A stretch of 64,000 nt of DNA from positions 4,278,001-4,342,000 of the forward strand of contig CDRNST010000080.1 in the NCBI GenBank assembly GCA_977016875.1, in the 5' to 3' direction. The number at the start of each line of letters is the position of its first letter. The first letter of the stretch is position 1. The stretch is from Pavona decussata (lineage: Eukaryota). Below the pieces are notes generated by a model that was given only the letters and a program-made list of their open reading frames with translations, did not search any database and was not told the origin of the DNA. The position numbers and the translations under genes are program-made. This document shows, piece by piece, positions 1 to 51,523 of this stretch.

Positions 1-142
1 GCTCAGGCGATTGACGAAAACGAAGAAGATGCTCTCAGTTTTTGAGGCAGGGAAATTCGGCGACTCCAATACAGTTGCACTTCAAAGGACTGTGTGGTGG
101 TTTTTATCCCTACACCTGGGTTTCCAAACCAGAGATGAGAGC
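1..142 (+). pseudogene. Crypton-type tyrosine recombinase (DUF3504-like) fragment, frameshifted
   Basis: Manual translation AQAIDENEEDAL / FEAGKFGDSNTVALQRTVWWFLSLHLGFQTRDES resembles the Crypton/ZMYM motif LQRTVWWFLSLHFGFRxRDE. Confidence 0.65.
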
Positions 143-510
143 GATGAGGACGATTGACTTAATGCTGCTTCTTTTAAAGTTGAATGTGATTTTCACAGCA
201 ACCTTTTCTTGATCCGTACTTTGTGATGGGCTAGTAAAGTTTCGACGAAACCAGTTTTGTGAGTTTCAAAAACAAACCGCAGCTGTTAAGATTTTCGTCA
301 AATTCCGCTACAAATCGTTCTTGAAGTCTTTTCTATAATCAACATGATTACATGTAAACGTTTAGTAAATTTGCTTTTAAACTCGTGGTACCGAAGCTTG
401 CTCTTTCTGGGTTGCTCGCGTCATCAAAAACACGTCACGCGGGAAACCCTTTGAATTCAAGTGACCGGAAGTGCGTTTTTATAAATAAACAAGTTTGCTC
501 CGAGTGCCAT

Positions 511-673
511 ATAATAAACTACTTACTAACCTAGCTTGCTCGAGCCGTACTGGGGAATATTGGCCCTCAGTCGTTTTTGTAAGGACCTCGCTGCACTCGG
601 TCCGTACTGCCACGACCTCGGGCCAATATTCCCCAGTACGGCCCTCGCGCTCGGTTAGTAAGAGGTTAATATT
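511..673. mobile_element. Palindromic MITE-like element or Crypton-type terminal hairpin
   Basis: Inverted arms cgtactggggaatattggccc (~547-567) and gggccaatattccccagtacg (620-640); outer arms cttactaac/gttagtaag. Confidence 0.7.
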
Positions 674-769
674 TTTTATTGCTTGTTGAACAGGATGTGA
701 ACAGGAAACCATATGCAGCAAAGATTTGAGTGCAGCTGAGATCTTCAATTCTTATCGTAATGAAGTGGT

Positions 770-1180
770 TGCCCACCAATGTGGCACTCAGTTTATTTCA
801 GTAAACAGGATGCAAATATCACTGGTTATGCAACTGATGTGCATTTATAAAGATCCAAGACTAGATCTGACTAAACCACTTAATGTGAACTTTGTTGGTG
901 AACATGGAGCTGATGTTGGTGGACCAACAAAAGAGTATTTCCATGAGGCCATATCAATCTTAAGGTGGACACTCTTTACAATATTCAGCTGTTTGGTGGG
1001 CAAGAAGGCCATTTACTTCCCTTGTATGGGGTTGATACCATCTCTTCAGGTTGCTTCGAAATGGCTGGCAAGCTTATTGCCCATAATGTACTTCATGGAG
1101 GGCCTGGGATGGCAGGGTTGAGCCCAGTTGTGATAAAATACTTAGCCACAGGATCAATCGATGAGGCTAAGGAATATATA
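770..1180 (+). pseudogene. HECT E3 ubiquitin ligase (G2E3-like) N-lobe fragment, frameshifted
   Basis: PLNVNFVGEHGADVGGPTKEYF in one frame, then LFGGQEGHLLP...FEMAGKLIAHNVLHGGPGMAGLSP in another; frameshift near 960. Confidence 0.8.
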
Positions 1181-1474
1181 GACCATAATTATGACATTGT
1201 CAAGAGAATTTGCTGTGTGCCTTGCACATGTTATGTCTGTGTGTGCATGTGAATGTAAAAACTAAAAGAAATTGTACAGTTATATATGGTTGAAATTAAA
1301 CAAAAAAGGAATTAAGACGTCTACTCAAAAAGGGCCATCAGTCAGAAATGGAAGAGCCCAATACATATATCTACTTTGATGGGGGGGGGGGGGGGGGTAC
1401 TGCATTTTTGAAAGTGGCCTACAAGAGACTCAATGAAAGATCCACTTGCATGTAGTGCACGACATAAGCATTAC

Positions 1475-2081
1475 CTTTAGGGTCAACTCTCCTCATTGCC
1501 TCCCTGATCCTTTCCTCTTGAACTTTATGACCCTTGCACAGAAGATGGCCCCGCATTGATTTGTAGCCACAGTTTGGGAAATTGTGGAGTATATCCAGAA
1601 TGATAATGTCTAACTCCACTTCACTTATATCTGAGTAGCTCGCGCGAACCGGTAATTCAAATTCTTGTAGTCTCTTATAAACTGTTTTATTGCTGACACT
1701 GAGCATCCTCACTATGTCACTGCCCTTAAAACCTTTCTCTAGGAAATACTCAAGCTGATTTCGACTGATATATATATTTGGCCTCCCTTTATTGCCAGTT
1801 ACTATCATCGGTCTGTTGTTGTGGACGTGTGCAGATTCCTCATTGCATCTAATCATAAGTGAAATGACATTATGGGCTTGACGTAACTTTGGAAGGAGAG
1901 CTGCTTCAAATGTTCCCCCAAGCCTCAAAACCAGCGAGCATAACCACTCCACCTTATACAAGCCATAATCAAGATCTGCATTGCAAGCCAGTTGATTCAT
2001 AACATCAAGAAGTACCGTTTTTATGTTACTTTCTATAAGTTTTTGTGACGTTCGATGTTGACCCTGCAGGTGAGCCGCCAT
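1475..2081 (-). pseudogene. IS3EU-like DDE transposase, N-terminal HTH exon; catalytic core absent
   Basis: GRPNIYISRNQLEYFL..GF...IVRMLSVS..TVYKRLQEF...YSDISEVELD...PNCGYKSMRGHL..KGHKVQEERIREAMRRVDPKG; likely ATG at 2081 (MAAHLQ); splice donor aaag|gtaatg after 1475. Confidence 0.75.
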
Positions 2082-2159
2082 ATTTGCTGTTATGTATCTG
2101 GAAAAGCACTCTAGGAAACAAACTTTTTTCAATAAGCCGCTGGCCCGATGGAATGACGT

Positions 2160-2460
2160 TTCTGATCCAATGACATGAAGTTCGATCTGGTGGCATGATG
2201 TATATAGTTCGAGTGAATGGTCTACGATCCAATAACAGGAATGTGGTTTTCTGGCAGAATGATGCATTGCAATGACATAAAGCCCCACATAAATATAAGA
2301 TACGGTAGAATGACGTATGATCCAATAAAATGAAGTCCGATCCAATGACATGAAGCATATTGTCGGATAGAATGATGTATGATTCGGTGGCATGGCGTTA
2401 ATGGTCCAATGGCATGAAACTCGATTCAATTACATTTTCGTCCCAATTCCCCCTCCACAT
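2160..2460. repeat. Subterminal short repeats (gatccaatgacatgaa-like) of the IS3EU-like element
   Basis: Degenerate copies at ~2164, 2227, 2319, 2339 and 2403, upstream of the transposase; possible terminus near 2460. Confidence 0.55.
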
Positions 2461-3093: not shown

Positions 3094-3171
3094 AACCTGT
3101 AACATGCTGTGATAGTTGCTGGCTAATACGGGGACATTTCAGTCAAAATTGCATTAAAAATTACATCACAG

Positions 3172-4625
3172 GTGCCCTTCTATATTATGGGCATTTGTCT
3201 ATGAGAGGTGCACACAGAATTTGTAATGAAGATTTATGGAAAGGCACTGCTTAGTCAGCTGAGGGACATCTCAGCAGGGAGCTTTGGGCTCTGGCAAAGG
3301 AAGAAGGCTTAAAAGCTGCAATAAATTGGCAGGATGCTGATTCATCTTCTGCTAAAGGTCTTAGATACTCTTTTCCAAATGAACAGGAGTCAAAGATTAG
3401 GTTGTGTGGGGGCCATATAGGGAGGGCACATGAAATAAGGGGTAAATCCTCATTCACACCAGCATTTATTGCCCTGCACAAATCAGAATTTCGGTGAAAT
3501 GCTGTTGTGCTGGCAAAAAACATACATTTGTTGCTACAAGAAACAAGCCTGCTTGTGGTTGCATTAGTCCTGCATTCATTCAAAATGCCAAGAGGAATCA
3601 TTACTGTGCTTTGATTGAAGCTGACACCAGCCCTGAGAAGTACAAAGATACCACACTGACTCTAGGCAAATACCACAGCAGGGACATTCATGAGTGGGAG
3701 GGGGGCTCCTGTTCATTTCACCCACTAGTAAAATGTATGTGTAAGGAGTGTGTTGCGGATAACAATATGTTTTATCCAGACATGAAGTGCCAAGGACAGC
3801 CATATCGCTCTGCTCACCCGCTGAAATGTGAATTTCATGCGCTGACTTATGAGATAGAGTGTGCTAAAAGGGCAAACAAAGCAGGCCAAGTAATTAACCA
3901 GGATTTGGGGAAGGGGCATTCGAACTTACCAGAGGCCACCTTTAGTGTGTTGCCCAAATTTAGGGCCAAGGATACAAATCTGCACCAAAAGCACTATCAA
4001 GCCTCAACAAATTTGGGCTTGCTTCAAGCCAGCATGACCTGGTGCTACAGGCAAAAGGGACCGCAGTACCATTGGATTGTAGAATTGTATTCACAGATTG
4101 GACTGCCAGTTCTCAGTGGAGTTCAGGAAATGGTATGTATCAGAAATCTTTAGTTTGAACTAAAAGTATTCAGACAGGTTACAGGAAATGAAAATAGACC
4201 ATTGAAGAGACAATACCGACTAAATCCAACCGTTTTTAAAACTTTTGATGAATAAAGTTTTATGGTTTACAGTTCTATTTCAGAATACTTTCATAGATTA
4301 CACACTTTTCTATCCCGGAGTAATGCAATGTAATGTGTAGCACTACACTTTCTCTATAGTCATATTTGGCATAACAGTAATTGAATATTTCTATGTCGTT
4401 GTCATTCAAAAGACAAGAAAATATTCAATGCTAGTAATCCTTGAGCATATGGAGACAGGATCAGATAATGGAAATGTCCATAAGTTGGCGCAAATGTTAT
4501 GTTTAATTATTTTTGCTAGTGCCAACAGGACAACGAAGACAGAATGAAGCAGTTAGAGCGCTACAAAACAGATGCTGAAAAAAAAAGGTGCAAAAAAAAA
4601 ATCGTGCAGAGGAGCAAGAATTAAG
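3172..4625 (+). pseudogene. Mutator-like DDE transposase, spliced, with stop and frameshift
   Basis: GALLYYGH..WKGTA*SAEG..NWQDADSSS..LCGGHIGRAH (CxxH)..HSNLPEATFSV; cag acceptor at 3171, donor after 4131, further exon ~4520-4625. Confidence 0.65.
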
Positions 4626-5602: not shown

Positions 5603-6305
5603 CAATATCTCGAGAGAAAGTGTTGTGGTGAAGGTCTAAATTCTTGCTATTGTTTGGTGTATCTTGAGCTCAAGAAATGTAATGCTGATAGTGAAGGACT
5701 AATACCAGTGTTCTTGCTTAATTATCAATACTATTAGTCTACCTAGAAAACACAGTTAGTAAAGGTCACCGCTCCGTTAAACAGTATCTCAAGAAAAAGT
5801 GTTGTGGTGAAGGTCTAAATAAGTTCTTGCTATTATTTGATGTCTCTTGAGCTCAAGAAAAATGTTGATATTATTGATCGTGAAGGACTAAAGGTGCATT
5901 TCCCCTCCGTTAAACACTATCTCGAGAAAATGTGTTGTAGTGAAGGTCTGAATAAGTTCTTGCTATTATTTGATATCTCTTGAGCTCAAGAAATATGTTG
6001 ATATTGCTGATAGTGAAGGACTAAAGATGCATTTACGCAACAGCAACAGTGTCTCGAGAAAAAGTGTTGTAGTGAAGGTCTGCATAAGTTCTTGCTACTA
6101 TTTGATGTCTCTTTAGCTCAAGAAATATAATGTTCATATTGTTGATAGTGAAGGACTAAAAATGCATTTTCGCAACAGCAACAGTATCTCGAGAAAAAGT
6201 GTTGTGGTGAAGGTCTAAATAAGTTCTTGCTATTGTTTGGTTATCTTGAGCTCAAGAAATAAATTATAATGTTCATATTGTTGATAGTGAAGGTCTAAAT
6301 ATCAG
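5603..6305. repeat. Tandem array, ~133-bp unit, 5 copies
   Basis: tatctcgagaaaaagtgttgtggtgaaggtct... starts at ~5603, 5781, 5914, 6046 and 6181. Confidence 0.9.
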
Positions 6306-6447: not shown

Positions 6448-6725
6448 TGTAAAACTCGAATCCCTGCTCTGTTTATGTAAAAATCAAGGTCTGATTTATC
6501 AGAATCATTCCTGTAAAACTTGAATCCGTAAACTGGATATATAACAATCCAGGTCTGGTTTGTTGGAATCCATTCTTGTAAAACTCAAATCCCTAGCCGG
6601 TTTATATAACAACCCAGGTCTGGTTTCTTGGAATCCATTCTATAAAAACGTGAATTCCCAGCCTGTTTATGTAACAATTCAGGTCTGGTTTGTTAGAATC
6701 CATTCTTGTAAAACGCAAACCCCAA
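6448..6725. repeat. Tandem array, ~65-bp unit, ~4.3 copies
   Basis: tgtaaaactc.aatccc...ccaggtctggtttgttggaatccattc at ~6448, 6512, 6577, 6641 and 6707. Confidence 0.85.
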
Positions 6726-6769
6726 GCTTGTGATCTTGCACAATTTAGGGCATTAAAGTTTGGATCACG

Positions 6770-10267: not shown

Positions 10268-10379
10268 AAATCAACGAGTGTGAGAGCAGCCGCTGTCTCA
10301 ATAATGGAACGTGTGAGGATGAAATAAATGGCTTCAACTGCAGCTGTCCACCACGTTTTGTCAGAAACAGATGCGATAG
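10268..10379 (+). pseudogene. Calcium-binding EGF-like exon, 112 bp (frame-breaking)
   Basis: ag|EINECESSRCLNNGTCEDEINGFNCSCPPRFVRNRCD|gt; 2 bp shorter than the 114-bp sister exon. Confidence 0.85.
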
Positions 10380-15329: not shown

Positions 15330-15497
15330 AGTGTTTGATGTAGCATGCCCTCGAATTATTGAGAAGTTAAACATTGAAAATCTCAAAGCTGTACAATGGG
15401 AATCTTTGAAAACTTTAGTTACCAAGCAAGATGTATTTGTTATTTAACCAACTGGATCAGGAAAGTCTCTAATTTTCCAAGCTATGCCAATGGTTTT
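15330..15497 (+). pseudogene. RecQ-family helicase N-terminal fragment (Q motif and Walker A)
   Basis: KLNIENLKAVQWESLKTLVTKQDVFVI*PTGSGKSLIFQAMP (manual translation; absent from the ORF track). Confidence 0.75.
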
Positions 15498-21660: not shown

Positions 21661-21741
21661 GTAATCCAGTTATTAATCTTTTGAGAATGCTAAGATGACA
21701 ATTTTATTTTAGTTAGAACCTTTTATCTTAATGCTGCCTGT

Positions 21742-34420: not shown

Positions 34421-36599
34421 ATTGTTATCCATGCAATATACATGTAGGAGAGAATGAATACTTATTCCATTGATGTAGTTTTATTGTAGAGTAACATCAA
34501 AATTAAATGTTCATTTAATTGTTGCTGCTGTCCCTTCAGGCTCACGGGATTTTGAGCCTAGTTTTAACTTTCAGTTTTCATGATTTTTCTGGTCCCCTCC
34601 GTGACAGCTTAAATAAAGGACCAAACCTTCCCACGAGTTGCAGGAATAATTTTGAAAAGAAGGATGTTAAAATGTACTGGTCCACCAAATTCTCATCCCT
34701 TTCACTGCCATATTTTCCATCAGTCATATCAAGAAACCTTTACCAGCTGATTTCAAAGTTCTTGCACTGTAATGACAATACAAGCGAAGAAGTGTGTCAT
34801 GATTCTCCGAGGTACAGGTACAACCCATTGCACAAATATAGGTTGCTTTTGTATTTGCTAAATAGTTCTTGTAAACGCTATTACCTTTCAGAATGCCTAC
34901 TTTCAATTGATGAAAACCTAATTGGATTGAAAAAATCGCACTGAACTGATTCAGTACATAGCCGACAAGCATCACCATTAGTGGGGTGTCAGGTTGTATA
35001 CTGCTACCAAATCACAGATCACATACCCATTGCATACACAGTTTACTGTGGAAAAAAGCGTGCTCCTACAGCCTCTGAATTTGGCCATTCTTATGATGTG
35101 GTGTTTGATCTTCTTACCCAAGCAGGATTATTGAACAAGGGTTACCACTTATTTGTGCACAATTTTTACACCAGCCCAACCATAGAAGACCACCTGTTTT
35201 CCAAGGACACCCTTCTCACAGGAACTCTTTTCTCCAACAGGAAGGGTGTTCCAGCAGTCCTCAAGGCAGCATAGCCGAAGAAGAACGAGTATGTTTACTT
35301 TAGGAAAGGATTGATTCTTGCCTCTCCTGGCGGGAGAAGAAAACACAGAAAAACCCCTTCCTTCTCCTTAGCACAGGCATCCCAGCTGGTATGGTGCAGC
35401 ACAGGAAACGCGATAGAACAGTCAAGGAACTACCTTATCCTGTGTCTACACACAACAAGCACATAGGTGGGGCAGATCTCCTTGACCAAATGGTTGACCG
35501 TGTCGCTGCAGAAGGACCTATCATAAATTTTGGAAGTGTTTTTTTGCAATCATAGATCGAATGGCATTTTGTGCATATCTCTTTTATGAGAAGAACACAG
35601 CAGCCGAGCAAAAGCTTTCACGGTTTGATTTTATGTGTACTCTGATGGAGGAACTGTGTGGTAAGAGTTTAAATGAAGAAGGAGAAACCCATCCAGTTCA
35701 GCCAAAAGGGCACAGGATTAAAAGAATTCCAGACGGCAAGGCAAGGGATTGTGCAGTACGTTCCGACAGGAGTGTTCCGGGTGGCCGCAAAAGGGCTAAG
35801 ACCCAGTGTGTTGGTTGCCAGGTGGGAGTCCATTTGGACTGTTCTGGGTCTTTGGACCACAGGAACAAGAAGAGGAAGCTATGAACATTATATTTGAACG
35901 GAGACTGGAGTGTATATAACTTTCATTTTTTTTTTTTGTTCTACTGCGTCGCCTTAGAAAAAGGAGCTCTCAAAAAGAACTTTTATACTTGTTATTATAA
36001 GAGTGTTATGCTTGTAGAAGAAAATTGTGTTTGTTTTTGGTTCCTTTCTTGCATCATTTCTTTAAAAAAGGTAAAATCCAAACATTGCAAATTCTTTATA
36101 AAAGGTGGTTGTTTTGTTGCAGAAATGCTTAGCAGGAAAATATGTTTAAAAGAATCAATGAAAATTTTAGAAATCTGATACCAGAGGTGCCATGGAAACC
36201 AGAAATGAATGAAATATGAAAGCACATTTTATGAGGAATAAATTAGAGGTTGTTTCATTGAAATTTGACCTTTGCTTCCATAGTTAGAGCCATTTTTGTC
36301 AGCCCAGTCATTTTGCCCATTTTGGCTCTGGCACTGGGGCTGTCTGGAGACACCCCACAGCATTGGGGTAGACTCCAGAAGGACGTAGGGCGAGAGGGAG
36401 ACCAAAGACCACTTGGAGAAGGACTGTTGAGAGGGGGAGAAACAAGGCAGGGTAAAGAGTTGGAATGTAGCCAAGGCGGTGGCACAAAACATACAGTGTT
36501 GGTCAGAGAATGTGTCTGCCTTATGCACCTATTGGCGTGCGGAGATTTGATGAGGATGACTGGGGTCGTCACCCACCCAGAATTGTGGCACTTTTAGGG
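34421..36599 (+). mobile_element. piggyBac (PGBD4-like) element, copy 1, 5' part of transposase deleted
   Basis: SIDEN, WGVRLY, GYHLFVHNFYTSP, GGADLLDQ and C-terminal Cys-rich CVGCQVGVHLDC; 3' end cacttttAGGG. Confidence 0.85.
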
Positions 36600-37129: not shown

Positions 37130-37878
37130 GCTATAAAATGGGAGAGGTTTGAGAAAAGCAGTGATAAGAAACTTGGTGGTTTGTTGCTGAAGAAATGAAA
37201 GGTGTCTGACTACAATCTCATACTTGTCCCCTGCAACGAAGTTGGAAGCAACCACTGGTTTCTTCTCTGTGTTTACCCAAAGGTGCAGCATGTTGTGGTA
37301 CTTGATAGTGCAGCTGGAGAATTCATTAAGCCTACACATCAAAGAGCTATCACGAAGATGTGGAGAGCATTGGTTATAGCGAGTGGTGAACCAAGCCCCT
37401 GTGACTGGTCTTGTTATGTGAACAGTGATGATGATGTGCTGCAACAAGAAACGGATTTTGATTGTGGTGTTTTGTTTGCGTGTTTTCAAGAGCACTTGCT
37501 CTTGCAGATCCCCTCATCCTTAATGCAGACATCATGGATGTTAGAAAATCCATCATTCATGATCTGTATTTTCAAAGCCTCAGCCCAATGCCATCTGTAA
37601 GGGTTCAGGTAGGGATGAACTATGCAGTTGACTATGTGACCACTTTCTATTTTGGAAGAGTTACATCTGTAGAAGGCAGCTTTGTTGGACTTAAATTCTT
37701 GCACAGCAAAACCTCCACCACCTACGACTGGCCAAGAATGGATGATGTTGACAGAGTACACTGCAGTTGCACTTTTTATGGTCCTGTGTTGCTGGACGGC
37801 AATCGCCCTTCTACTATTTCAACTCAACATGAAGTTGAGAACGTGCACTTTTTCATTAAAAAGCCGCACAAACTGTAA
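37130..37878 (+). pseudogene. Ulp1/SENP (peptidase C48) domain plus a C-terminal domain, frameshifted
   Basis: NHWFLL..VVVLDS..QQETDFDCGV catalytic motifs; continues in a second frame YAVDY..FGRV..KFLH..YDWP..D..FYGP. Confidence 0.8.
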
Positions 37879-38366: not shown

Positions 38367-40725
38367 CCCTACAAGACTTAGAAGTTAAAGTTTTGAAAAG
38401 GTCATGCATTTGATAGGACAAGGTCTTAATGAGCCTTTTAGAGTGTTGCCTTTTTCTCATGTCTAGCATTTTACATGAACCAAACTTAATTTTTCTCCAT
38501 AAAATTAAAAAAAATTTAAACTGAAAGTGATGCTGTTTGAGAAAGAATGCCATATTAAACTATGAATGTGCAACAACTTTACTGGCATACAGTGTAATAC
38601 TCATCAGGAAGGTTTTAGTTTATAGCCCTGTATCATTTTACTTTAAACACTTGGCTACCCAAGGGACAAAAGGTACCCTCCATGACACTCCCCTCTGTGA
38701 CAATAGCCACATCACTCATTGTTATCCATGCAGTATATGAGAGAATGAATACCTATTCCATTGATGTAGTTTTATTGCAGAGTAACACCAAAATTAAATG
38801 TGCATTTAATTGTTGCTGCTGTCCCTTTAGGCTCACAGGATTTTGAGCCTAAGTTTTAACTTTCAGTTTTCATGATTTTTCTGGTCCCCTCCGCGACAGC
38901 TTAAATAAAGGACCAAATCTTCCCACAAGTTGCAGGAATAATTTTGAAAAATATTGATAAGAAAGAGTCATAAGTAGTTTATCCTTTGAAAGTCCAGGGT
39001 GTGCAAAACTAAATTAGGTAAGGGAGTTATCTATGGCATTGTCTTTTAAGCTGTCCCCTCCACAACATGCTAAAAAACATGGAATTACCCTATAATAATA
39101 CTAATAATATGGTGCCACAGGTCACTGTGAAGTGCCAGGGCCACTCTGAATGACCCTTAGAAATAACAACAATTATGATTGGGTAGAATTTGAAAATAAT
39201 CTCTCTTGGTCCTACTATACAACAGATAACCAATGCCTAAATTGGAGAAGTTTGGATGTTATTTGGAAGACACGACGAGTAAATCCGAAAGTACGTGTCC
39301 TCATGATCTTAGGGCATGAACAAAATGGGGTCAAATGTTCACTCAGATCTTGAGGATAATTCCTGCAAAAAATTTTGACGCAGTTAGCAGTGATATTTAT
39401 TCAGAAGAAGAAGAATCAAGTCCAGAGGAAGGTGAAGAAGATTTCAGCAGAAAAGAAGATGTCAGCAATTCTGAACAACCAGAAAACAGAAGTCTTTGGA
39501 TTTGTGTTTATCTGCTGGAGGATTCGCATCCTGAAGATGATGTTACTTTTTCTGTTCAAAACCCTGGAGTTCGAAACATGCCGCCTTCCACTTCAACCTC
39601 TCTGATATATTTTCTCTTATTTCTCACACAAGAAATTCTGGCCAAGATTGTGCGAGAAACCAAATGCTATGCCAAAACCTTTTTCCACACGAACAGGGAC
39701 AATTTGTCACCTTAAAGCTGTGCGAGACGACGGGCAAGAGCCACTTTTGATGTTGCAAAACAAAAGAAATATCTTGGACTGACTTTATTGATGGGGCTTA
39801 TAAAGAAGAAGGATGCTAAAATGTACTGGTCCACCAAATTCTCATGCCTTTCAATGCCATATTTTCCCTCAGTCATGTCAAGAAACCTTTACCAGCTGAT
39901 TTCAAAGTTCTCGCACTGTAATAACAATACAAGCAAAGAAGTGCGGCGTGATTCTCTGAGGTATGACCCATTGCACAGTTTAGGTTGCTTTTGTATTTGC
40001 TAAATAGTTCTTGTAAATGCTATTACGTTCCAGAACGCCTACTTTCAATTGACAAAAGCCTAATTGGATTGAAAAATCGGACTGAACTGATTCAGTACAT
40101 ACACAACAAGCATCACCACAAGTGGGGTGTCAAGTTGTATGCTGTTACCAAATCACAGACCGGATACCAATTGCATACCACTGTTTACTGTGGAAAAAGG
40201 CATGCACCTGCAGCCTCTGAATTTGGCCATTCTAATGATGTGGTGTTTGATCTTCTTACCCAAGCAGGATTATTGAACAAGGGTTACTGCTTATTTGTGC
40301 ACAATTTAAACACCAGCCCAACCATAGCAGACCATCTGCTTTCCAAGGAACTCTTTGCTCCAACAGGAAGGGTGTTCCAGCAGTCTTCACGGCAGCATAG
40401 CCAAAGAAGAAAGAGTGTTTTTACTTTAGGAAAGGATTGATTCTTGCCTCTCCTGGAGGGAGAAGAAAACACAGAAAAACCCCTGCCTTCTCCTTAGTAC
40501 AGGCATCCCAGCTGGAATGGTGCAGCACAGGAAACGGTGTAGAACAGTCAAGGAACTACCTCATCCGGTGTCTACACACAACAAGCACATGTCACTGCAG
40601 AAAGGGCCTATCATAAATTTTGGAAGAAGTGTTTTTTTGCAATCATCAACCGAATGGCTTTCTGTGCATATCTCCTTTACGAGAAGAACACAGCGTGCGC
40701 ACCCAGAATTGTGGCACTTTTAGGG
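38367..40725 (+). mobile_element. piggyBac element, copy 2, 3' part of transposase deleted
   Basis: ataa|CCCTacaag putative 5' end; acidic N-terminus; YFLLFL..IVRETKCYA, SIDKS and KWGVKLY; same 3' end as copy 1. Confidence 0.8.
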
Positions 40726-41249
40726 TTTTAAATAAACATACTAATAAATGATCAAGTGCACATCAAAATAAAACTATAACTACCAATACTAACTAAACAC
40801 ACAACGAGCCGCAAGCCCTAAAATTTCTGTCCCGAAGTTAATTGAATTATACTTTTACCATTGACAGGTCGGTCAGAGGATTAAAGCGTCCGCTGGGGTG
40901 ATCATTTACACCTTCAGAATGAAAGAATGTCAAAAAGAAATTGACACCTCAAAGGATAATTGATAATTGCTTACGATAACAATGACACTTTACATGGTAC
41001 GCATCTGGTGTCAAAGGGATACATGACGTTTTCATTCTTGCTGTATGCATTTATAAATTCAGTGTATGATGACTTTTCAACCAGGCTCGAACATTTCTTT
41101 TTGTTTTTAACAAGCCTGCGAGGGAAGCGTTTTAACAATTTTGAAACCTTCTACAATAAAATATATTCAACTCTATTCTTCGCGTGCCGGTGCGACACAA
41201 TTCAGGACCATTCACACAGGAAGCAGAGGAGTCCTATTTGACCGACTGG

Positions 41250-41830
41250 CTGAAGATTTGCTTGTATATGTGTGGAACTACGCATTTAAACAGGACAGAT
41301 TTTCCAGACGATTTGAAACCAAACAGACCAGCAGTGAAAGCACTTTGTCATGGGGATCAATTTTTAGGCAGAAAGGGAACATTGTGACAATTGTCTGGAA
41401 AGACAAGAAGGCTGCATCTTTCATTAGCACGCAGTGTGATGTTAGAGGCGATGAAACAGTTCGCGAAAGCAGAAGGATGGAACGTACATCGAAGTTCCAA
41501 CGATCCCTGCCGTTACCCTTTACAACAAGTACATGGGGGAGTCGATCACAGGGACCAAATGTGCCAGTATTACGAGACCTCAAGGCAAGCAAAGAAGTGG
41601 TGGCGCTAACTGTTTTGCTTCTGCTTATAGGTGAATACTGTCAATGCCAATATTCTCATGCAGATCACCCAAAATCATCCAAATTTGACATAACTACAGT
41701 TCCGTATCGAACTGGTCAATGGGCTGACTGGAGAGTTCTCTTCGCGTCGACATACCATTCAACACGCGACTGTTCAGTCGGGGCACTGGCCAGTGAAAAT
41801 AACAAAAAGGGCAGACGCAAACAGTGCCTT
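41250..41830 (+). pseudogene. Second piggyBac-family transposase, C-terminal fragment
   Basis: CGTTHLNR..VWKDKKAASFIST..LYNKYMGGVDHRDQ..YY..KKWWR (across frameshifts). Confidence 0.8.
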
Positions 41831-42117
41831 AATGTTATCTGTGGAATTGTGCAAGATCCAGAAATGGGGCAGAAAATTGCATTTAATATGTGGCTAAATG
41901 TAATTTAGGCAAAGTTAAAATCGAGACAACTGCTGGTCAGCGGTGCCCGCATGGCTGGGACATGCAGGGCGGCCACCCTACTTTGCAGGGGCCCCTAGGT
42001 TCTTACAGCTCACACGTTTGTGCCAATTCATTTCGCATCTGTTCACTTGCCGGAGCTTGTGCTGTTTAAGTTTGTTGCTTCTTTTTCGTCCAGTTTTTCT
42101 CGTTTTACGTCTTTGTT

Positions 42118-43350
42118 ATGTCCCGAAACACTCACAATAGTTTACAGGCTCGGCTTTTCGCTGGCGACACGTCATCTACGGCGGATGGTTCGTCGAGTAT
42201 TCAATGTGAAAGTTCGCCTGCTGTTGAGACGTCTCTGCCTTCCACGTCAGCTAGTTTGACTTTGGCGGCTTCAGCGGCGCCCACTTTACCGCCCGAGATG
42301 ATTTCACTGATTACGCAAACGGTTCGAGCGGCCATGGCGGCCGAAAAACCTCCTGCATCCGAACAAGTGCAAGCGGTTCCGAGTGCTGTACCGCCCGCGA
42401 GTGCTGGGGGCGTTCCTGCCTCAAATTCCTTAGATGCTTCGGCTGCGAGTTTCATGGCATCGGGCAGTGCAATTCCTCTTGGACAGCTGTTACAAGGTAG
42501 GCCATCTTCTTGTGTTGTTGTCCCTTCATTTGTGCAAACGTTCGCTGCGCCCGTCATGTCGCTTACACCTTCGTTTACTCCGCCAAGCAATGTAATTCAA
42601 CAGGCTCCAGCGCTCACCACTCAACCCGCTTCGCTCCTGGATCAATCGTTCGTGGTCGGGCCGGGTTTTTCTCCCGTTCCAGCGAAGCTAGTGGCTCAGA
42701 TCGTGGGCGGCAAATACGTGGATTTAAGTGATCTCCTGGCCCCCAACCTGCAACAGTGAGAGCCCGAACCGCAACTTATGTTTGATGGCCGACTCGTTTT
42801 GACCTCGCAACCAAAACGGCAGCGCCGTCGCATCGAGGACATTGCCAGCTGGATGGAAGCGTTTTCCATCTTTTCACTCGTACTATCTTCCCACTTTCCC
42901 CACCGTTGGAAAGATTTAACTCAATACCAGCTCCTCATTTTGCGCACACATCGCCATTTTAGCGGTAAGGTGTGGCTGAACTATGACCGAGCGTTCCGTG
43001 AACATGCGGCCGCGACAAAGTTGACCGATTGGTCTTGCATAAATGTGCAGCTGTTTAACTTCCACGCAGCTGGCTCTTCGTCCCGCGGATCGTCATATGC
43101 CCAACCAGCTGAGGCTTCTGAGCCATCCGGTTCCGCCTTTTCAAGTACGCTGTGCAAGTCATGGAACAGGGGGCGGTGCACGGCTCCAGTCAACCCCTGT
43201 CGCTACGCGCATCGCTGCAGTCTGTGCTCAGGTTCTCACCGGGCTAACACGTGCCATGATAGCGCCGAGAAAGCTGATCGAGGGGATGCCAAGCGTCGCG
43301 GCAGCTCGCCCACCCCTAGCCATGCCTCAAGCAAGGCCTGGCGTGCCTAA
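42118..43350 (+). pseudogene. Ngaro gag-like ORF with one in-frame TGA (42757-42759)
   Basis: ORFs 42118 and 42778 are in the same frame; WLNYDRAFR and CKSWNRGRC..CRYAHRCSLCSGSH motifs. Confidence 0.85.
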
Positions 43351-43749
43351 TGTACTGTTGTAGCTTTGCAATTTTTTCTTGCCCCAGTTTTTTTTTTTCA
43401 CGCCGCTCTGCTTTATTAATTTCATCTCTCCAGTGGCAGGGGCCTTTTTGTTTGCCACCATGGCAGTTCACTTCGATTTTAGGTTACTTGCTTCGTATTG
43501 CTTGATTTTTCACCATCTCGTTAGCTACATGTGTCTCCTAATTGTATTTCGATAAAGCCAACATTCGCAACTGTGCATTTGGCCTTTAGGGCCTTTGTTG
43601 GGCATCTCTACTTCATTGTATAGGGTGATTGCCAATAAAAGTTTTTTATTTTTGGCTATTTTATCTGTATATACATATATTTTTCTCGTTGGGGCTACGT
43701 CTCCTAAGCATGTGCATTTTTTCCTTCCAGTGCCTTTGTGCTTCCCGCC

Positions 43750-44808
43750 TATCACGGTTATAAGTCCTTTGAATGCCTCAGAGTTTGCTCGGGAGTTGAC
43801 AGCTCACCCCCAGCCACAGCAGGTGTCTAATGTCCTCAATGGCCTCCGGAACGGCTTTAGACTCCGGTTCCAGCCCCTTCGGAAGCTGTCCTCTGCCCGA
43901 AAGAACAAACTTTCAGCGTTCCAGCACCCAAAAATTATAGATGACTACTTGGCCAATGAGGTTGCCTTTCATAGGGTAGCGGGCCCCTTTTCACATCCCC
44001 CCTTCCCTAATTTGCATATAAGCAGTTTTGGAGTTATCCCCAAGAAGGGCCAACCTGGGAAATGGCGCTTAATTGTGGACCTATCGTCTCCGAGCGGCAG
44101 TAGTGTTAACGATGGCACTGACCCGGAGGAATTTGCTATGCATCACGTTAAAGTGGATCAAATAATTCAAATGGCGGCTAAGTATGGCCCGGGAGCCACG
44201 ATGGCGAAATTTGACGTCGAGGCCGCTTATCGCAACATTGCTATCCACCCGGCTGATCGTTATTCCATCTAGATCTCCTTTGGTGGCACGAATTCCTTTC
44301 TGCTTGGCATGGAGTCAGCTTTTGGCTTTTCCCTGGGCTTTCAGCCGCTACGGACGTGGAAGTCACCTCGGACGCTGCTGGATCCCTCGGTTATGGGGCT
44401 TACCTTGGGGATGAGTGGTTCAGTGGCGCTTGGGGCCCATCCCAGGTCCCAGAGCCCATTGCGTACAAAGAGCTGTTTCCTGTAGTTGTCTCATCGTGCG
44501 TCTGGGGCCACCAATGGTTCAGGAAACACGTTCTGTTTCGGTCCGACAATGAGGCAGTGGTTTTCATCCTCCAGTCCAGGACCTCTAAGATCCCCGCGCT
44601 AATGCGGCTTTTGCGTAAGCTGCTGTCATCAGCGGCCCGTTTCAATTTTACCTTTACCTCGCAACATGTTCCCGGCATTCATAACCACATTGCTGACGCC
44701 CTTTCTCGCTATCGTTGGCAGGAGTTCAGACGATTAGCTCCACAGGCCTCGCCGTCTCCAGTTCCAATTCCGCAAAGCCTACTGGACGAATTGACCCTTC
44801 CAGCCTAG
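43750..44808 (+). pseudogene. Ngaro RT (catalytic core deleted) and RNase H
   Basis: SSFGVIPKK..KWRLIVDLS..AKFDVEAAYR ends ~44263 and jumps to LDLLWWHEFL; RNase H TSDAAG..ELFP..FRSDNEAVV..HVPG..IADALSR. Confidence 0.88.
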
Positions 44809-45755
44809 AAGACCAGTGCCGTGAGTTCCTGATTAAGGGCCTGGCTTCATCTACCCGAAACTCCTACGCTTCAGGACAGAGAAAGTTTTACGACTTCTGC
44901 CATCAGTTGGGCAAGATTCACTCATCTGGCTCTCCATGCCCAGCTGATGAGTGGACCCTGTGCTTGTTTGCCACGTTCCTGGCCAGGTCAGTACAGCACA
45001 CCACCATTAAGGTTTACCTATCTGCAGTGCGGTCCTTGCACATCCAACAAGGCTTTGCAGATCGTCTCCTCAACTGCCTGCGACTCCAACGGGTTTTGCG
45101 GGGAATCAAACGATCCCAAGGTGGCCCCTCCACTTCTCGGTTACCGATCACAGATCACATCATGCTGGTCATCTTTAAGTCGTTGGACCTGAGCATTTCA
45201 GACCACTGCATGTTTTGGGCCGCTTGCAATTTGGCCTGTTTTGGCTTTCTCCATTCTGCAGAGTTCACAGTTCCGAACCTTTCCAGTTTTTCTCTCGACA
45301 CCCATCTGGGGGTGCCCGATATCGCGTTTGACTCGGTGGTTGCTCCCACCTGCCTGAGGGTTAGGATAAAAGCGTCCAAGACCGACCCATTCCGCAAGGG
45401 GTGCTTTCTACACATTGGTCGAGGCTCCTATCCTTTGCGTGCCATCCAAGCATTGGTGGCGTACCTAGCTATCCGGGGAAGTGCACAGGGCCCCCTATTT
45501 TTACTTTGCGATGGTCGTCCCTTGTCATGGGTCCTTTTGACCGACTGGCCTTGCCGCATATTGTCATCCTCGGGAGTCCGAGGCAACTTTTCCAGCCACA
45601 GTTTCCGCATCGGTGCAGCCACGGTCGCAGCACGAAATGGGGTCCCGGATCATCTCGTTCAGGCTCTGGGCCGCTGGTCAAGCAATGCCTATCAATTGTA
45701 CATCAGAACTCCAACAGAGTCGTTAGCTACGCTATCTAAACAGCTCGCAAGTTAA
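44715..45755 (+). CDS. Ngaro tyrosine recombinase; ORF open but first catalytic Arg appears replaced by His
   Basis: FGFLHSAEF, SKTDPFRKG, HSFRIGAAT and GRWSSNAYQLYIR. Confidence 0.88.
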   Translation: MAGVQTISSTGLAVSSSNSAKPTGRIDPSSLEDQCREFLIKGLASSTRNSYASGQRKFYDFCHQLGKIHSSGSPCPADEWTLCLFATFLARSVQHTTIKVYLSAVRSLHIQQGFADRLLNCLRLQRVLRGIKRSQGGPSTSRLPITDHIMLVIFKSLDLSISDHCMFWAACNLACFGFLHSAEFTVPNLSSFSLDTHLGVPDIAFDSVVAPTCLRVRIKASKTDPFRKGCFLHIGRGSYPLRAIQALVAYLAIRGSAQGPLFLLCDGRPLSWVLLTDWPCRILSSSGVRGNFSSHSFRIGAATVAARNGVPDHLVQALGRWSSNAYQLYIRTPTESLATLSKQLAS

Positions 45756-47639
45756 GCGTCACCTGTGTTGTTCCCCTGGCCATCGGGTCATGTTCTTTAC
45801 GCCCCACGCCCCCACCCCCCTTCTGCCAGCAAGGGCGTGTGGTGGGGGTTTGACGGGCCCGCTTGCGCTTACCCTTCGTTCCTTGTAGCTGCCGTCTCTG
45901 CACTCAGGAGCCCTCCTTTGGGGGGTCCGTGGCTCAGTGCTGCCATCAACTGGACCTGCGGCACATGGCCTATTGGCGACAGGTTGTCGTTTTCTGAAAA
46001 TCCCTTTCCTCTACTGTTTGGTGCTTGTCATGGTTGTCCTGGCGGGTTCTGTCAGTAGTCAACAGTTGCGTTTCCGTTTTCCTGGAGTGGTATGTATGGC
46101 TTATTGTCTCTGCCTGTTACGCTTGTATGGCTTGGGGGGTCAGGTGCTTGGAAGAATTGGTGGGTTCAGGTCCCCCCTCTCCCTGTTCACGGGTCCTTCG
46201 CCCTCCAAGCGAGAGTGCAAGGTCTGGGTGGTTGCTGCTCACAGGGTTGCCATGGTTTCGCACCTCGCTTAGCTCACTTCACCTGTGGCACCACCGGTCT
46301 TTCAGGCACCAACCCCCAAGCTCATCCACTAACGATGAGTTTAAATGTGGCTAAATGTAATTTAGGCAAAGTTAAAATCGAGGCAAGTGCTGGTCAGCGG
46401 TGCCCGCATGGCTGGGACATGCGGGGCGGCCACCCTACTTTGCAGGGGTCCCTAGGTTCTTACAGCTCACACGTTTGTGCCAATTCATTTCGCATCTGTT
46501 CACTTGCCGGAGCTTGTGCTGTTTAAGTTTGTTGCTCCCAGTCCCTCCCACCCTTTGGTAAGTATGGTTTGTGGTGGGTGTGGTAAGTATTTTTATTTGT
46601 ATACTTTCTGTTTTATCTCCACTGATCTTTCAGTGTGACAGTGCCGGGTGGTTGCCGCTCACAGGGTTGCCATGGTTTCGCACCTCGCTTAGCTCACTTC
46701 ACCTGTGGCACCACCGGTCTTTCAGGCACCAACCCCCAAACTCATCCACTAACGATGAGTTTAATTTTAAGTTGCTTCATGCCACCGGGCCCTGAAAGGC
46801 AGTTTCTGGTTCAGGTCAAAATCTTTTGACCTTTCCATTTGGGTTTTCGCTGTGGTGCAGTTATCACGATCCTTACCTCTACTCCACTAGAGTGAGGAAA
46901 ATTTACTCTCCTGTGACTGGTCCCCGGGGGATAATTATCATCTAGAACATACGGTACTAGAACCTTTGAGCCTGTGAAAACATTGGCAAACCATTCCCTG
47001 TCACTGGTCAAGGTTTGTTGTTGGGAAGACAAATAACCTGTACTGTGAACTGTACGAAAATATGGCAATTCAACCCCCCAAGGCATTCTTATTTTAATTG
47101 CGAGCATTGAGTGCCTCCACCTCCTCCCCCCTTTCACTCTCCTCAAAGTCTTAGAGTACCGGTGCCGAATTGTTGCATCAACTACTCTTTGGATTACCCC
47201 AGACAGGTTTTTTTTTCTTTTTTTTTACACACCGAAGTCCTAAATGCAAGTTTTGTTGTTGTTGTTGGTTTCGGAAAACAGAAATGTTGAAAAAAGTCAA
47301 ATGGGTTTAGAAAATAATAATAAAATATTGATAATCAAATGATCCTAACACTTGTTGACCCGGACAAGTAGCAGTTAATATCGTTAGCTATAAACCGATA
47401 TTAACCAAAAGTTGACAATTGCGCCAGTTTTGAAATTTGCGCTGCATTTCGATCCAGTCTTATTGTAGTCATGATTGAAATGCTGTAACAAGTATACAGC
47501 ACGCGTCTAAATCCTGGGAAAGGCTGGTACGTCCTGAATGAGGATATTTGCAGGCCAGCTTTTCATAAATACCGCAAAAATTCTTTCTTCTGACTATTTC
47601 CAGACGAAGCACAGAAGGTGCCATACTGCAAACTTCGCA

Positions 47640-48267
47640 ATGAGAGTGGAAATGCTCTCGAGCTCTTCAACTTTAGGCCTTTGTGGGGCACTTATTCGCC
47701 AACGCGAATTAAACGACCAGAGCTACTTAACAAGTGACTCATTTAAAAGAATTGCAGTAGCCATTAACAATCATTGTGCCATCACTGGCCTCCCACGAAA
47801 TGGCGCAAGTTCTACACTGCATTACAACCCTTCAAAAGGAACTTGAGGAAGCCAAGGAAAAGGTCAAGGATCTTCAAAGTATTCTTGCTGACAAGTATCC
47901 AGCATCCAACCTTACCGACGAAAAATTGACTACATCGCCAAAACAAAAGAAGACAAGGCTTAGCAAAAAGGCGTGGGAAATTCTTCGTTCCCTGGAAGAT
48001 ATCTGTGGAAGGTACATTTGTGCACTCACGACCCCGCAAATCAGCCAAGTGAAGCTCGAGACATAATTTCTGAGATAGTCACCTCAGTCACCAAGAAAAA
48101 AAGGAGTGAAGTGAGGACTCCAAACCCTTGTCCCAGATGTTTCGCAACAATACGTGCATCAATTCCACGTCCCTGTCTAAGCTCTTCTTTACTTCAAACT
48201 TGAAGCCAAAATTCCCGATGAAGGATGGCAAACGATGATAAATCTGACGAAGCTGGGAAGAACAGGG
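47640..48267 (+). pseudogene. Degraded exon of an unidentified, probably transposase-like protein
   Basis: Coiled coil, KQKKTRLSKK, then LLYFKLEAKIPDEGWQTMINLTKLGRTG|gtaagt donor; frameshifts. Confidence 0.35.
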
Positions 48268-49698
48268 GTAAGTTAAAGTGAATTGTTCATTTTGCTACTA
48301 AATCGATTATTTAATATTTAACGCAGAGGGGGGGGGGGGTTAGCTCAATATGCTAGGAATAAAAAGACATTATGGGGCTGTGTGCTAAAAATTCTCAAAA
48401 GGCTTCCAGTGAAAGAGTACAGAATTAGACAATTTCATAGGGGTGGGGGTGGGGTTTTGTCAAATAGGAGGGGTAAACATGATTGGTTGTGCCTTATCAT
48501 ATTATAATTTTATTAGTCCTAACAAAGGTAATATCACTTACTTTTATTTCATGGCTTTCAGTGAAAATTAACAATATTAAACTCGTTTATATTCTACTCT
48601 TCTCCCCCACCCCACCTCCCTAACTACTGCCTCTTGTCTTTTAAGAAACAGAAATTCTGCCTTTTTAAGGTTAGATTATAAGATAATGAAAAACAGTTTT
48701 ACGTCAAATAACTAAATGTTATTCCTTTTATTAACAGAGAGATAGTGAAAAAAAAGATAGCAGAAAAACTAAAAGGGGACAACCTTGATTAAGGAAAGCA
48801 ACTTTTTCACATCAAAGATTTGCTGCAAAAAAATTGCTCCAGTTGCCTGCATTCGCATCAATATATTGTCAACTTTTATATCCTCTGCAAATAGGTTATA
48901 TCCCAATTTCTCGAAAAATATTCCAGCTTGTTTTGATCATAGTAAAAAGTTCATTTTTATGGAAAAATATAAATCGAAAATTCTACAACCTGAACATACA
49001 TGGTAACGTTAACTTGCTACTTGTCGACAAACCGGAGATTTTAAAATTTGTGATGTACCTTTGTTTCCACCGGCTGGGCCTGTGAAAGGGGGCTTGAACA
49101 GTGAGAGTGTGAGATACTGTAATTATAAACGTTCATTTACTAGCGGTCCCTTTAATTTGAGCTCCATGCATTACTGATGTCATGAAAGTTCCCAAGTAAA
49201 AGATAGCATCCCCATTACTCAGACGCAGATCCAGTACCAAGAGCTGCAATGGAATCCAAGAAAGAACTAAAGTGAGGACGTCGTGAACAAGAGTCAGAGG
49301 CTGGCGAAGATGGAGAACAGGCGAAGAAAAGGCATAATACTTACCACAAAAACTTAAGAAAAGCTCAAAAGAAAAGGCGAAAGGAAAGAAAGAAGATTGA
49401 GGCTGCTGGAAATAAGGGAAGGAAAGAAGATAAAACCGTCGTAGTCGGACAAAACTGAAGCACACAAACCGCATAACGACAGTAGTGTTGACAACAGAGC
49501 GGAGTGTAGGGATGCCAGGCAACAAGATTTCTCAAGAGGAAAACAAATGGTTTCTGCTGCACTCATAAGAAAGACAGAAGAAGGAAGAGACAATAAGCGA
49601 CTCAAAACAACAACGCAGGCAACTAAAGTATCAGGAAAGGGATACACAGCTCAGTCGAGTACCAGTGCCCTCAAAGACATCGACCCCGCTAATTTAAG

Positions 49699-50421
49699 GT
49701 GAGAGTTGGGAGCAAAGTTATCTTCGACACGTGCTTCCTTGCAAAGTACCAGGAAATTAAAGTGGTAGTTAAAGAGTACAAGAGTGCGGACAGTTCCACC
49801 AAAGGCAACAGCTTTGAAAGGCGTAGGAAAGAGGCTGCCCACGAGGCTCAGGTGATTCTGGAGCTGGGTGATCATCCAGGAATACCCCTTTTATTTGGGG
49901 CGAAATCTCAGCAACAGCCAGTCAGCATCATGCTGAAATTTCATGGGAACGGAAGCAAAAGCCTTACCCTCCTTAACGCAGCAAAGAAAAGAAAAATAGC
50001 AAAAGAGGATTGGAAGAAGATTTTTTGTGATGTTGCGGATGCCATGCAGCATATTCACCATTGTGGGTACATACAAAATGACCTGAAAAGCAATAATGTC
50101 GTCTTTGAGACAACTGAAAGTAGCCACCCGAAATCTGTAATCATCTACTTCAGAAAAAGTGTTTTGGCAGCAAAAGCGAAGAAGCCTAATGCAAAACCAC
50201 TCTGTATGGGAGTGCAATACAAGAACAGCTACATTGCGCCAGAGTTAATCAACGGTACATGCAAACCATCTGTAACTGATATTTTTTCCCTTTGTTTCTT
50301 GATCAAGTCAGTGTATGGGCTTTTGAAGTTTAATCTCCTACCAATTGTGTGGAATGCGCAAACTCAGCCTTCAGAAAGTCGACCCTCAATTGAAGTGACA
50401 ACGGACAATGGGAGACAATAA
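49699..50421 (+). pseudogene. Protein kinase relic
   Basis: VVVKEY, HEAQVI..HPGIPLLFG, QNDLKSNNV (HxD degenerate), YFRKS in place of DFG, YIAPE and DIFSL. Confidence 0.8.
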
Positions 50422-50446
50422 GCTGGAAACCAACTATTTTGAGCTG

Positions 50447-51241
50447 TGCCACGGATTTACAGAAAATTCCATCCAGAAAGTTTATCTTATGCCATTTGCA
50501 GTCACAAATGAAGTAAAAATAATAATGTTCCAGTATAAAGTTATTCATAACATGCTTCCAACCTGTGCTACACTTTATCGAGACGACATTTTAGAAAGCT
50601 CCATATGTAACTTATGCAACCCAGAAGAACAAATGTTGCACCACCTGCCAATAAATTGTACACTAACAATCGATTTCTGGATGCTGTTTCAAGACTGGTG
50701 GTACCAGAAAACAAATGAAACAATAGCATTATCCACAAGCCATATACTCTACACCTGGCATGATAGCGCAAAGCATTGGCAAGTCCTAAGTTATTGTTTA
50801 CTAATAGCCAAATATTGCATTTTTTGCACAAGCCTTCGCGGAGGTGTTTTAGATTTTCAAACCTTTCTTTTGTCCATTTCCAGAAAACTTGAAATTCTTA
50901 AAGGTTTGAGGTTTTAAGGTTTAAGGTTTTTAGTTGCTAAAAAAGCACTCCCGAATTTTCATCGCACGTGGAATCTTTTACTTTAATTTTATATGCTGCT
51001 GATGTTTATGATCAGATCATCTGTAATAAATTTTGCAAATGCTACTAATCAACCCTAAGTCAAGTAGTGATTGTATTGTAATGTATGTATTCTTACTAGT
51101 GCATGTATAAATTGTTTATGTATATTAAGTAGTGTAAGTTACAATTTCCGCAAGCATCAATGTAAGTGTAATATATGTATTACTACTGTGTGTAGTGTAA
51201 TGTAAAAGTTGTACCCTGTAAATAAAATTGCATTAAATAAA
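50447..51241 (+). mobile_element. 5'-truncated L1/Tx1-clade LINE (C-terminal Cys-rich end plus 3' UTR) with 15-bp TSD
   Basis: FQYKVIHNMLPT..CNLCN..HLPINC..FW; aataaa and A-rich tail; TSD aactattttgagctg at 50432-50446 and 51242-51256. Confidence 0.88.
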
Positions 51242-51523
51242 AACTATTTTGAGCTGACACAGAGTCAGAAAATTAATTCAGCCAATTACTAAGTTGTGCC
51301 GTCTGGTATTTGTTGGATGATGGACATTCTAACAGTTATAGTTACAGTTTTATCTAAACGAAGCAAAGAAGAACATAAATTTGTCATTATGCTATAGTTT
51401 TGTATTTCTTTCCAATTTTATTCAGGGTGATAGGCTCCTCACGTGGCTTTGTTATATGAAACCGATGTACGTCGGCATAAGATTCTGAAAATTGTGAGTT
51501 TCAGATGTATAAAGCCATCGGTA

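Follow-up and report, generated by a model that had tools for sequence, protein, structure and literature searches.

A plus-strand array of transposon fragments in a stony-coral genome as a candidate unistrand piRNA locus

Introduction

In the stony coral Pavona decussata, degenerate and mutually abutting pieces of transposon genes fill approximately 40-50 kb of a 64,000-nucleotide stretch of contig CDRNST010000080.1 (assembly GCA_977016875.1, positions 4,278,001 to 4,342,000; hereafter the window), and nearly all of them lie in one orientation. These pieces form an old transposon graveyard, with at least ten unrelated protein families on the plus strand and one on the minus strand. An initial annotation of positions 1-51256 (hereafter the block) described this co-orientation as a candidate flamenco-like, unistrand cluster of PIWI-interacting RNAs (piRNAs). 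The content of the block, the measured bias, and the explanations that can account for it are described below.

The window contains no N and has a GC content of approximately 0.39, with a GC-rich stretch at 42-46.5 kb. A G protein-coupled receptor (GPCR) gene beside the block encodes a protein that matches those of Oculina patagonica, Montipora, and Desmophyllum at identities of 85%, 80%, and 79%, respectively, and the host is therefore a scleractinian coral. A dinoflagellate-style unidirectional gene array was considered in view of the holobiont-metagenome source and was excluded by the same 79-85% identity to scleractinian proteins. Open reading frames (ORFs) of the window recur on metagenome-type long-read contigs in ENA. 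Rfam, applied to the entire window with gathering thresholds, returned zero matches.

Strand orientation of the coding fragments

Identical procedures were applied to both strands, namely counts of stop-to-stop ORFs, Pfam searches of translated ORFs, and tblastn with fuller relatives of the fragments. Pfam gave almost no matches for 20 of the longest ORFs, so strand-wide scans and fuller relatives were used instead. Pfam was run first on every ORF of 70 aa or more from either strand and then on every ORF of 52-69 aa within the block. The plus:minus ratio of stop-to-stop ORFs in the block is 19:1 for lengths of at least 150 aa and becomes 45:15 and 77:42 when the minimum is lowered to 100 aa and 80 aa, respectively. 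By these counts, the plus-strand excess is weak over 1-12 kb, strongest over 12-51 kb, and reversed past approximately 51 kb.

Pfam matches on the plus strand of the block comprise DDE_Tnp_1_7 (four matches), Mutator (three), Peptidase_C48, Pkinase, EGF, zf-RVT, Phage_integrase, and RVT_3. Among minus-strand ORFs of at least 52 aa in the block, Pfam detected no domain typical of a transposable element (TE). The minus-strand matches are those of the flanking GPCR and of a C2H2 finger, both outside the block, and one chance-like Rubredoxin match. When fuller relatives were used as tblastn queries, plus-strand matches only were obtained for the protein-primed B-family polymerase (pPolB)-type fragment, piggyBac, an unclassified family here called family X, and the family of a 223 aa ORF. 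A minus-strand match was found solely for the ORF at 1440-2401, which confirms the earlier claim that the minus strand holds a single TE coding remnant. A base-composition artefact was excluded, because from the base counts of the window stop codons should be slightly less frequent on the minus strand (own arithmetic). The initial annotation had cautioned that its plus strand was read more easily, and this concern is removed by the persistence of the bias when both strands are scanned under the same protocol. The single-strand orientation bias in the block is not a reading artefact.

The size of the bias depends on what is counted. A ratio of 15:1 had been proposed for the block; the strong plus-strand excess holds in the ORF counts and the Pfam matches, whereas the figure of 15 was inflated. 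An 8 kb tandem duplication and a local repeat R in five copies raise the count, and several ORFs belong to single elements, as a caveat about shared parents had anticipated; the split falls to approximately 10:1 by element. The plus-strand families that remain after collapsing and were verified by a search tool are Mutator, family X, pPolB, piggyBac, Ulp1, Ngaro, kinase, and zf-RVT, to which a second haplotype adds pogo and a second piggyBac family. This element-level split gives a two-sided binomial p of 0.012, and inclusion of the EGF and HECT fragments gives 12:1 with p = 0.003. The earlier p of about 5e-4 was too optimistic once duplicates and multi-ORF elements were collapsed.

As background, four TE-anchored loci unrelated to the block were taken from this or related corals, a sample too small for a firm null. 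Their non-anchor elements are split approximately 10:6, and the window is more extreme than this small four-locus sample. Co-oriented runs of ORFs of at least 150 aa also occur at background loci, with ratios of 10:0 in L011, 9:1 in L006, and 13:4 in L005. The last of these (ERZ26692694 ctg14965, 20.9 kb) carries a family X copy among three Gypsy-type elements, and 20 of its 21 called genes lie on one strand, which makes it a second TE patch with strong co-orientation. Duplication and shared parent elements do not appear to remove the orientation bias of the block.

Coding content of the block

The fragments and other features of the window are listed in Table 1.

Table 1. Features of the window, in order of position
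Feature	Position	Strand	Basis and remarks
HECT-like domain fragment, host-type, degenerate	690-1249	+	weak match to start of E6AP HECT catalytic domain, E=0.01; no Pfam match
Only minus-strand TE-type ORF, multi-copy family	1440-2401	-	relatives carry PF27079; tblastn of P0035 on minus only
EGF-like (calcium-binding type) exon-sized fragment	10279-10374	+	Pfam EGF/hEGF, E ~1e-6
Mutator-like transposase fragment	15473-16285	+	PF20700, E=3e-11; weak tblastx/tblastn matches to Mutator ORFs of L006
Tandem duplication unit A	15722-23761	.	self-blastn, 95.9-96.5% to unit B
Local repeat R, five direct copies and a stub	16612-17362, 20202-20982, 24657-25432, 28618-29398, 33934-34423; stub 23611-23762	+	repeat search, alignment
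Family X (unclassified multi-copy TE protein) fragment	17356-19348; duplicate 25625-27756	+	relatives, tblastn
Protein-primed B-family polymerase (Polinton-type) fragment, unit A copy	22461-23612	+	tblastn with long relatives; internal deletion
Tandem duplication unit B	23762-34085	.	self-blastn; keeps ~1.7 kb missing from unit A
Protein-primed B-family polymerase fragment, unit B copy	31725-33935	+	tblastn outer bounds; ends at repeat R
piggyBac transposase fragment 1	34421-35601	+	DDE_Tnp_1_7, E=4e-10 and 3e-8
Ulp1/C48 cysteine protease fragment	37199-37597	+	Peptidase_C48, E=9e-11
piggyBac transposase fragment 2, reaching Ngaro insertion	38718-41792	+	DDE_Tnp_1_7, E=3e-18; tblastn with second-haplotype 360 aa piggyBac
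Ngaro-type tyrosine-recombinase retroelement	41883-46764	+	split direct repeats; gag-like, reverse transcriptase, RNase H and tyrosine recombinase genes
Relative of 223 aa ORF from extra unit of second haplotype	47489-47765	+	tblastn, E=3e-7
Protein kinase domain fragment	49693-50418	+	Pkinase, E=1e-15
C-terminal zf-RVT region of 5'-truncated non-LTR retrotransposon	50399-50914	+	zf-RVT, E=7e-6; labelled Tx1 in the initial annotation
CpG-rich stretch, right block edge	50001-54000	.	CpG observed/expected 0.93; long ORFs switch to minus here
Rhodopsin-type GPCR gene, adenosine-receptor-like, intact, unique flanking host gene	61836-62834	-	7tm_1, E=6e-23

The family labels of the initial annotation were sustained for Mutator, pPolB, piggyBac, Ulp1, Ngaro, kinase, EGF, and the zf-RVT tail of a long interspersed nuclear element (LINE), and weakly for HECT. 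For the labels Crypton, SGNH, RecQ, Sola, and hAT, no confirmation came from Pfam or, where a PDB sequence search was made, from that search. The stretch that presumably corresponds to RecQ/Sola of the initial annotation belongs to the unclassified multi-copy TE family X. PDB sequence searches were negative for the pPolB fragment, the minus-strand ORF, the SGNH-like ORF, and the ORFs at 3446-4150 and 41111-41905, and also for family X with either the window ORF or a fuller relative of 467 aa. The minus-strand ORF has 27 relatives, the best of which is 83% identical and falls within a 43-member cluster. It thus represents a multi-copy TE family on the minus strand, putatively the IS3EU-like one of the initial annotation. 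The six-cysteine EGF pattern occurs solely at 10279-10374.

The fragments are chopped and abutting, as first described. Family X lacks both ends in the window, the polymerase fragment stops at R, and piggyBac fragment 2 reaches the Ngaro element. Family X has at least 198 relatives, with other copies in L005 (89.6% DNA identity) and L006 (71%). A 345 bp segment of it is tandemly doubled (97%) at 25622-26313 in unit B only, and this doubling postdates the 8 kb duplication described below. Between the two piggyBac fragments identity is 85-92%, and both carry several interruptions.

The Ngaro label of the initial annotation is borne out by split direct repeats in the order A1 (41883-42079), B1 (46212-46344), A2 (46340-46536), and B2 (46632-46764), with no inverted repeats, and by weak recombinase and RNase H matches. 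These matches, Phage_integrase (E=4e-4) and RVT_3 (E=3.5e-3), are both below the Pfam cut-offs; there is no rve match, and other copies of the family carry the same weak integrase match. The GC content of the element is 0.51-0.54, and the family forms a 22-member cluster at 90% identity that includes intact forms of 410 aa. Relative to these, the gag-like gene of the window copy has one break, an in-frame stop. The Ngaro element is young and was a later insertion into the array, also on the plus strand. Elsewhere, the 30 kb contig L009 (ERZ25073751 ctg98178, flagged circular) carries two Ngaro copies and their flanks as a mirror-image palindrome, which probably reflects either inverted duplication or an artefact of assembly.

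The pPolB fragment has 2882 relatives, of which the long ones carry DNA_pol_B_2 and some have N-terminal C2H2 fingers. The copy in unit B corresponds to the N-terminal half only and has at least three interruptions, with both in-frame stops and frameshifts present, and the copy in unit A has lost approximately 1.7 kb that unit B keeps. No inverted repeats of at least 80 bp were found in the window, and Pfam gave no rve or ATPase matches, whereas a Polinton/Maverick element is recognized by terminal inverted repeats together with a retroviral-type integrase, a packaging ATPase, and capsid genes within one unit of 15-20 kb. An intact Polinton or other large element with terminal inverted repeats was excluded, as the window is without inverted repeats. 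The C48 protease fragment lies 3 kb from the polymerase, and no tie between the two can be demonstrated. The polymerase piece is an isolated fragment of a Polinton-type protein-primed polymerase and does not represent a copy of an element.

Tandem duplication, repeat R, and the second haplotype

Units A and B are 96% identical over most of their length and 90.6% identical over the final 1.3 kb, and the start of the duplication falls inside the Mutator-like fragment at 15473-16285. All 24 internal repeats of at least 150 bp found by self-blastn of the window are direct, and none is inverted. The copies of R are 0.5-0.8 kb long, share their 3' part, and vary in their 5' extent. R as a dispersed mobile element was rejected, as no copies occur in approximately 150 kb of other coral loci.

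A second assembly, ERZ25073751, represents another haplotype or individual and contains the same locus, which is colinear and approximately 98% identical over window positions 21.2-60.4 kb. The A/B junction and the Ngaro element are common to both. The second haplotype has an extra 7.8 kb unit between two R copies (L002:13672-20444 and L004:1-4579) that is absent from the window and maps between 33934 and 34423. The cargo of this unit is entirely on the plus strand and consists of the 223 aa ORF, a pogo-type transposase (HTH_Tnp_Tc5 and DDE_1, 415 aa, apparently full-length), and a distantly related piggyBac of 360 aa. In alignment, the R copy at 33934-34423 ("copy 3") agrees on its left flank with one R copy of the second haplotype and on its right flank with the next. 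Since the window R joins the flanks of two second-haplotype copies, the 7.8 kb difference is best explained by unequal exchange between direct R copies. The array grew and shrank by local tandem duplication and unequal R exchange, and orientation was copied along. A 523 bp insertion or deletion also separates the two haplotypes or individuals near window position 53096.

Block edges and flanking sequence

The ratio of observed to expected CpG is 0.47 over 12-41.9 kb, 0.77 in the Ngaro element, 0.93 at 50-54 kb, and 0.8-1.0 around the GPCR gene. To the right of 54.9 kb the sequence is unique, and it is syntenic in a related coral over 54.9-63.8 kb, where the compared stretch stops short of the block. 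Within this GPCR-syntenic region, the related coral (L013:16843-19849) carries a 3 kb insertion that the window lacks and that encodes a hAT-type transposase of 761 aa. Just to the right of the block, at 53577-53996, the minus strand contains an ORF of 133-140 aa with a C2H2 zinc finger. No relatives of this ORF were found at 90% identity, and it may be either a remnant of a TE or the opening exon of a gene on the minus strand. The lone opposite-strand TE is located at the far left of the block.

Two tandem arrays are present near the left side of the window, at 5780-6299 (133 bp unit, 3.9 copies, 87% matches) and at 6448-6731 (65/130 bp unit, 4.4/2.2 copies). At 479-748, similar peptides are encoded by ORFs on opposite strands, which suggests a short foldback or a structure resembling a miniature inverted-repeat transposable element, under the length threshold of the repeat finder.

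Explanations of the orientation bias

The leading explanation, a tentative one, is that minus-strand transcription acted as a strand-specific filter and that the block is a unistrand piRNA source locus. Transcription of the minus strand would start near the CpG-rich stretch at 50-54 kb and cross the block. Insertions antisense to this transcript would be retained, by which plus-strand fragments would accumulate, and the precursor transcript would give putative antisense piRNAs against the fragment families. In invertebrates, CpG depletion follows germline methylation of transcribed bodies. Because CpG depletion marks methylated transcribed bodies, the CpG pattern is compatible with a long transcribed unit starting near 50-54 kb, where the CpG-poor block abuts a CpG-rich stretch as expected for a methylated body beside an unmethylated start. 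The filter is also favored by the ORF counts, Pfam matches, and tblastn results obtained identically on both strands, by the element-level split beside the milder one of the background loci, by the predominance of unistrand clusters in Nematostella, and by the second haplotype, which adds further families on the same strand (pogo, piggyBac, and the 223 aa ORF). The change in copy number of whole units between haplotypes is reminiscent of the fast turnover seen in known clusters. The lone minus-strand TE lies at the block end furthest from the putative start. Unistrand clusters tolerate sense insertions near their 3' end (PMC10643416), and the position of this TE matches such tolerance.

Several observations weigh against this explanation. 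The test is post hoc, as the window was chosen for looking biased, and part of the bias stems from common parent elements and from tandem duplication. Were pPolB and Ulp1 to derive from one parent and kinase and zf-RVT from another, the split would become 7-8:1 with p of approximately 0.04-0.07. The host-type fragments (EGF, HECT, and kinase) share the bias, which a TE-silencing filter would not predict. The CpG pattern gives no direction and is not unique to the block; a second CpG-poor patch (54001-58000, observed/expected 0.26-0.39) lies outside it, in sequence conserved with the related coral. AATAAA occurs 27 times on the plus strand and 28 times on the minus strand of the block against a composition-expected 1.5:1 plus-strand excess, so that the minus strand is not depleted, and this parity is a weak argument against a conventional minus-strand transcript selected against termination signals. 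Most fragments are old and single-copy at 90% identity, and most have no partner at that identity except the allele, so few would match active copies well. Window ORFs were found in genome-type ENA contigs only and in none of the read-run assemblies.

The strongest competing explanation is that the strand has no function and that the block is an ordinary TE-rich intergenic region, in which a chance bias was amplified by orientation-preserving duplication and shared parents. The exclusively direct repeats, the doubled 8 kb unit, and the fivefold R agree with this, as do the co-oriented ORF runs at the background loci, the selection of the window after inspection, and the lack of depletion of minus-strand poly(A) signals. 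The possible shared parents of pPolB/Ulp1 and kinase/zf-RVT would leave perhaps 7-10 independent events (at 7:1, p=0.07). However, ten tool-verified families remain against one after collapsing, the additional families of the second haplotype lie on the same strand, no TE domain was found on the minus strand in ORFs down to 52 aa, and the background elements show a milder split. The locus resembles segmental arrays formed by unequal crossing-over in its direct repeats, in the difference in unit number between haplotypes, and in a junction that lies in a shared repeat. Duplication accounts for repeated copies, but it does not account for unrelated families in different units that share a strand. 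An origin of the bias by chance amplified in this way is less likely than not, though only somewhat less probable than the filter.

A further alternative places the block inside a host gene on the minus strand, in a very long intron or an untranslated portion. The geometry would be that of the piRNA model, with sense insertions purged for their splice and termination signals and no role for piRNAs. Minus-strand ORFs, including the C2H2-finger ORF, begin directly to the right of the block, and a CpG-poor body beside a CpG-rich start is the usual gene-body pattern of invertebrates. In contrast, Pfam found no host-type domain on the minus strand of the block and no minus-strand exons were found there, and an intron or untranslated region exceeding 50 kb would be exceptional in corals. 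The well-known antisense bias of TEs in introns is similar in that one transcribed strand filters insertions and the survivors lie opposite to it. That bias is mild and concerns mainly retroelements, whereas DNA transposon fragments carry it here. A host gene of this kind is improbable.

An equally small probability attaches to a single orientation-preserving process, whether the pieces were captured by a rolling-circle or other composite element, were joined as template-switch chimeras that end in R, or belong to a plus-strand transcription unit of exonised fragments: the fragments abut sharply, R copies differ in their 5' start and share their 3' part, the pPolB frame runs directly into R, host-type and TE-type fragments lie on one strand, and R-bounded units differ in content, but family X is truncated at both ends and not at the 5' end alone, R is absent from other loci, unlike a dispersed mobile element, the window has no terminal inverted or long inverted repeats, and Pfam found no helicase or Rep-type domain.

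The filter by minus-strand transcription may be extended to a bolder proposal. The locus would then operate as a unistrand "antisense trap" transcribed on the minus strand from approximately 51-54 kb. Its memory would be composed mainly of DNA-transposon and Polinton-type polymerase fragments and not of retrovirus-like elements, and whole units would be gained and lost by unequal exchange between local repeats. Such a locus would parallel flamenco in a cnidarian but act against a different spectrum of targets. This proposal is speculative and on balance doubtful.

Comparison with known piRNA loci

In flies, the bias of flam-like unistrand clusters is driven exclusively by Gypsy-type long terminal repeat (LTR) elements, and these clusters typically extend over hundreds of kb and have a mapped promoter (PMC10643416). 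The coral block shares with flamenco and flam-like loci an array of TE fragments over tens of kb, a strong one-strand bias, a unique gene flank, an apparently rapid haplotype turnover, and a lone opposite insertion distal to the putative start. In contrast to flamenco, no Gypsy/LTR domains were found in it, and its strongly biased part spans approximately 39 kb. No RVT_1, rve, Chromo, or gag-type LTR matches were found by Pfam on either strand in ORFs of at least 52 aa, and the only retroelements of the block are one Ngaro and one LINE tail. The name "flamenco-like", as first applied to the block, does not hold in its strict sense, since Gypsy/LTR elements do not dominate and the content is made up of DNA transposons, a pPolB fragment, the Ngaro element, and the LINE tail.

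Clusters described in cnidarians are closer in taxonomy. In Nematostella vectensis, 402 of 457 piRNA clusters are unistrand (PMC5731801), and 47-107 clusters per species were called with proTRAC in three reef corals, with a TE density below expectation (PMC13343488). These organisms belong to the same phylum as the host, and the corals to the same order, and one-strand loci are the common type in cnidarians. A piRNA cluster of this type is defined by a long precursor transcript and by dense, uniquely mapping RNAs of 24-31 nt with a 1U bias that come from a single strand. Unlike these clusters, which were defined by small-RNA reads, the block is defined by TE orientation only. The low TE density of described coral clusters also counts against a piRNA role, as the block is very TE-dense (PMC13343488). 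The locus is a genuine and moderately unusual TE-fragment array, and a reasonable candidate for a unistrand piRNA cluster of the kind known in cnidarians. It should not be filed as flamenco-like, although it may still work like a unistrand cluster.

Significance

If the block is not a piRNA source, it is an ordinary duplicated TE graveyard and a caution that orientations should be counted only after correction for duplication and shared parents. Even if it is one, the gain would be incremental, as unistrand clusters are already documented in Nematostella and corals. The practical value of the locus lies in its resolved haplotype-level structure and in its use for testing whether orientation bias predicts coral piRNA loci. 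If the piRNA explanation is true, the block would be a well-resolved coral case of a TE-dense, orientation-biased unistrand piRNA locus in which the variation of units between haplotypes is already mapped. Orientation bias would then flag such loci outside Drosophila, and it would do so for DNA transposons and Polinton-type fragments rather than for Gypsy elements.

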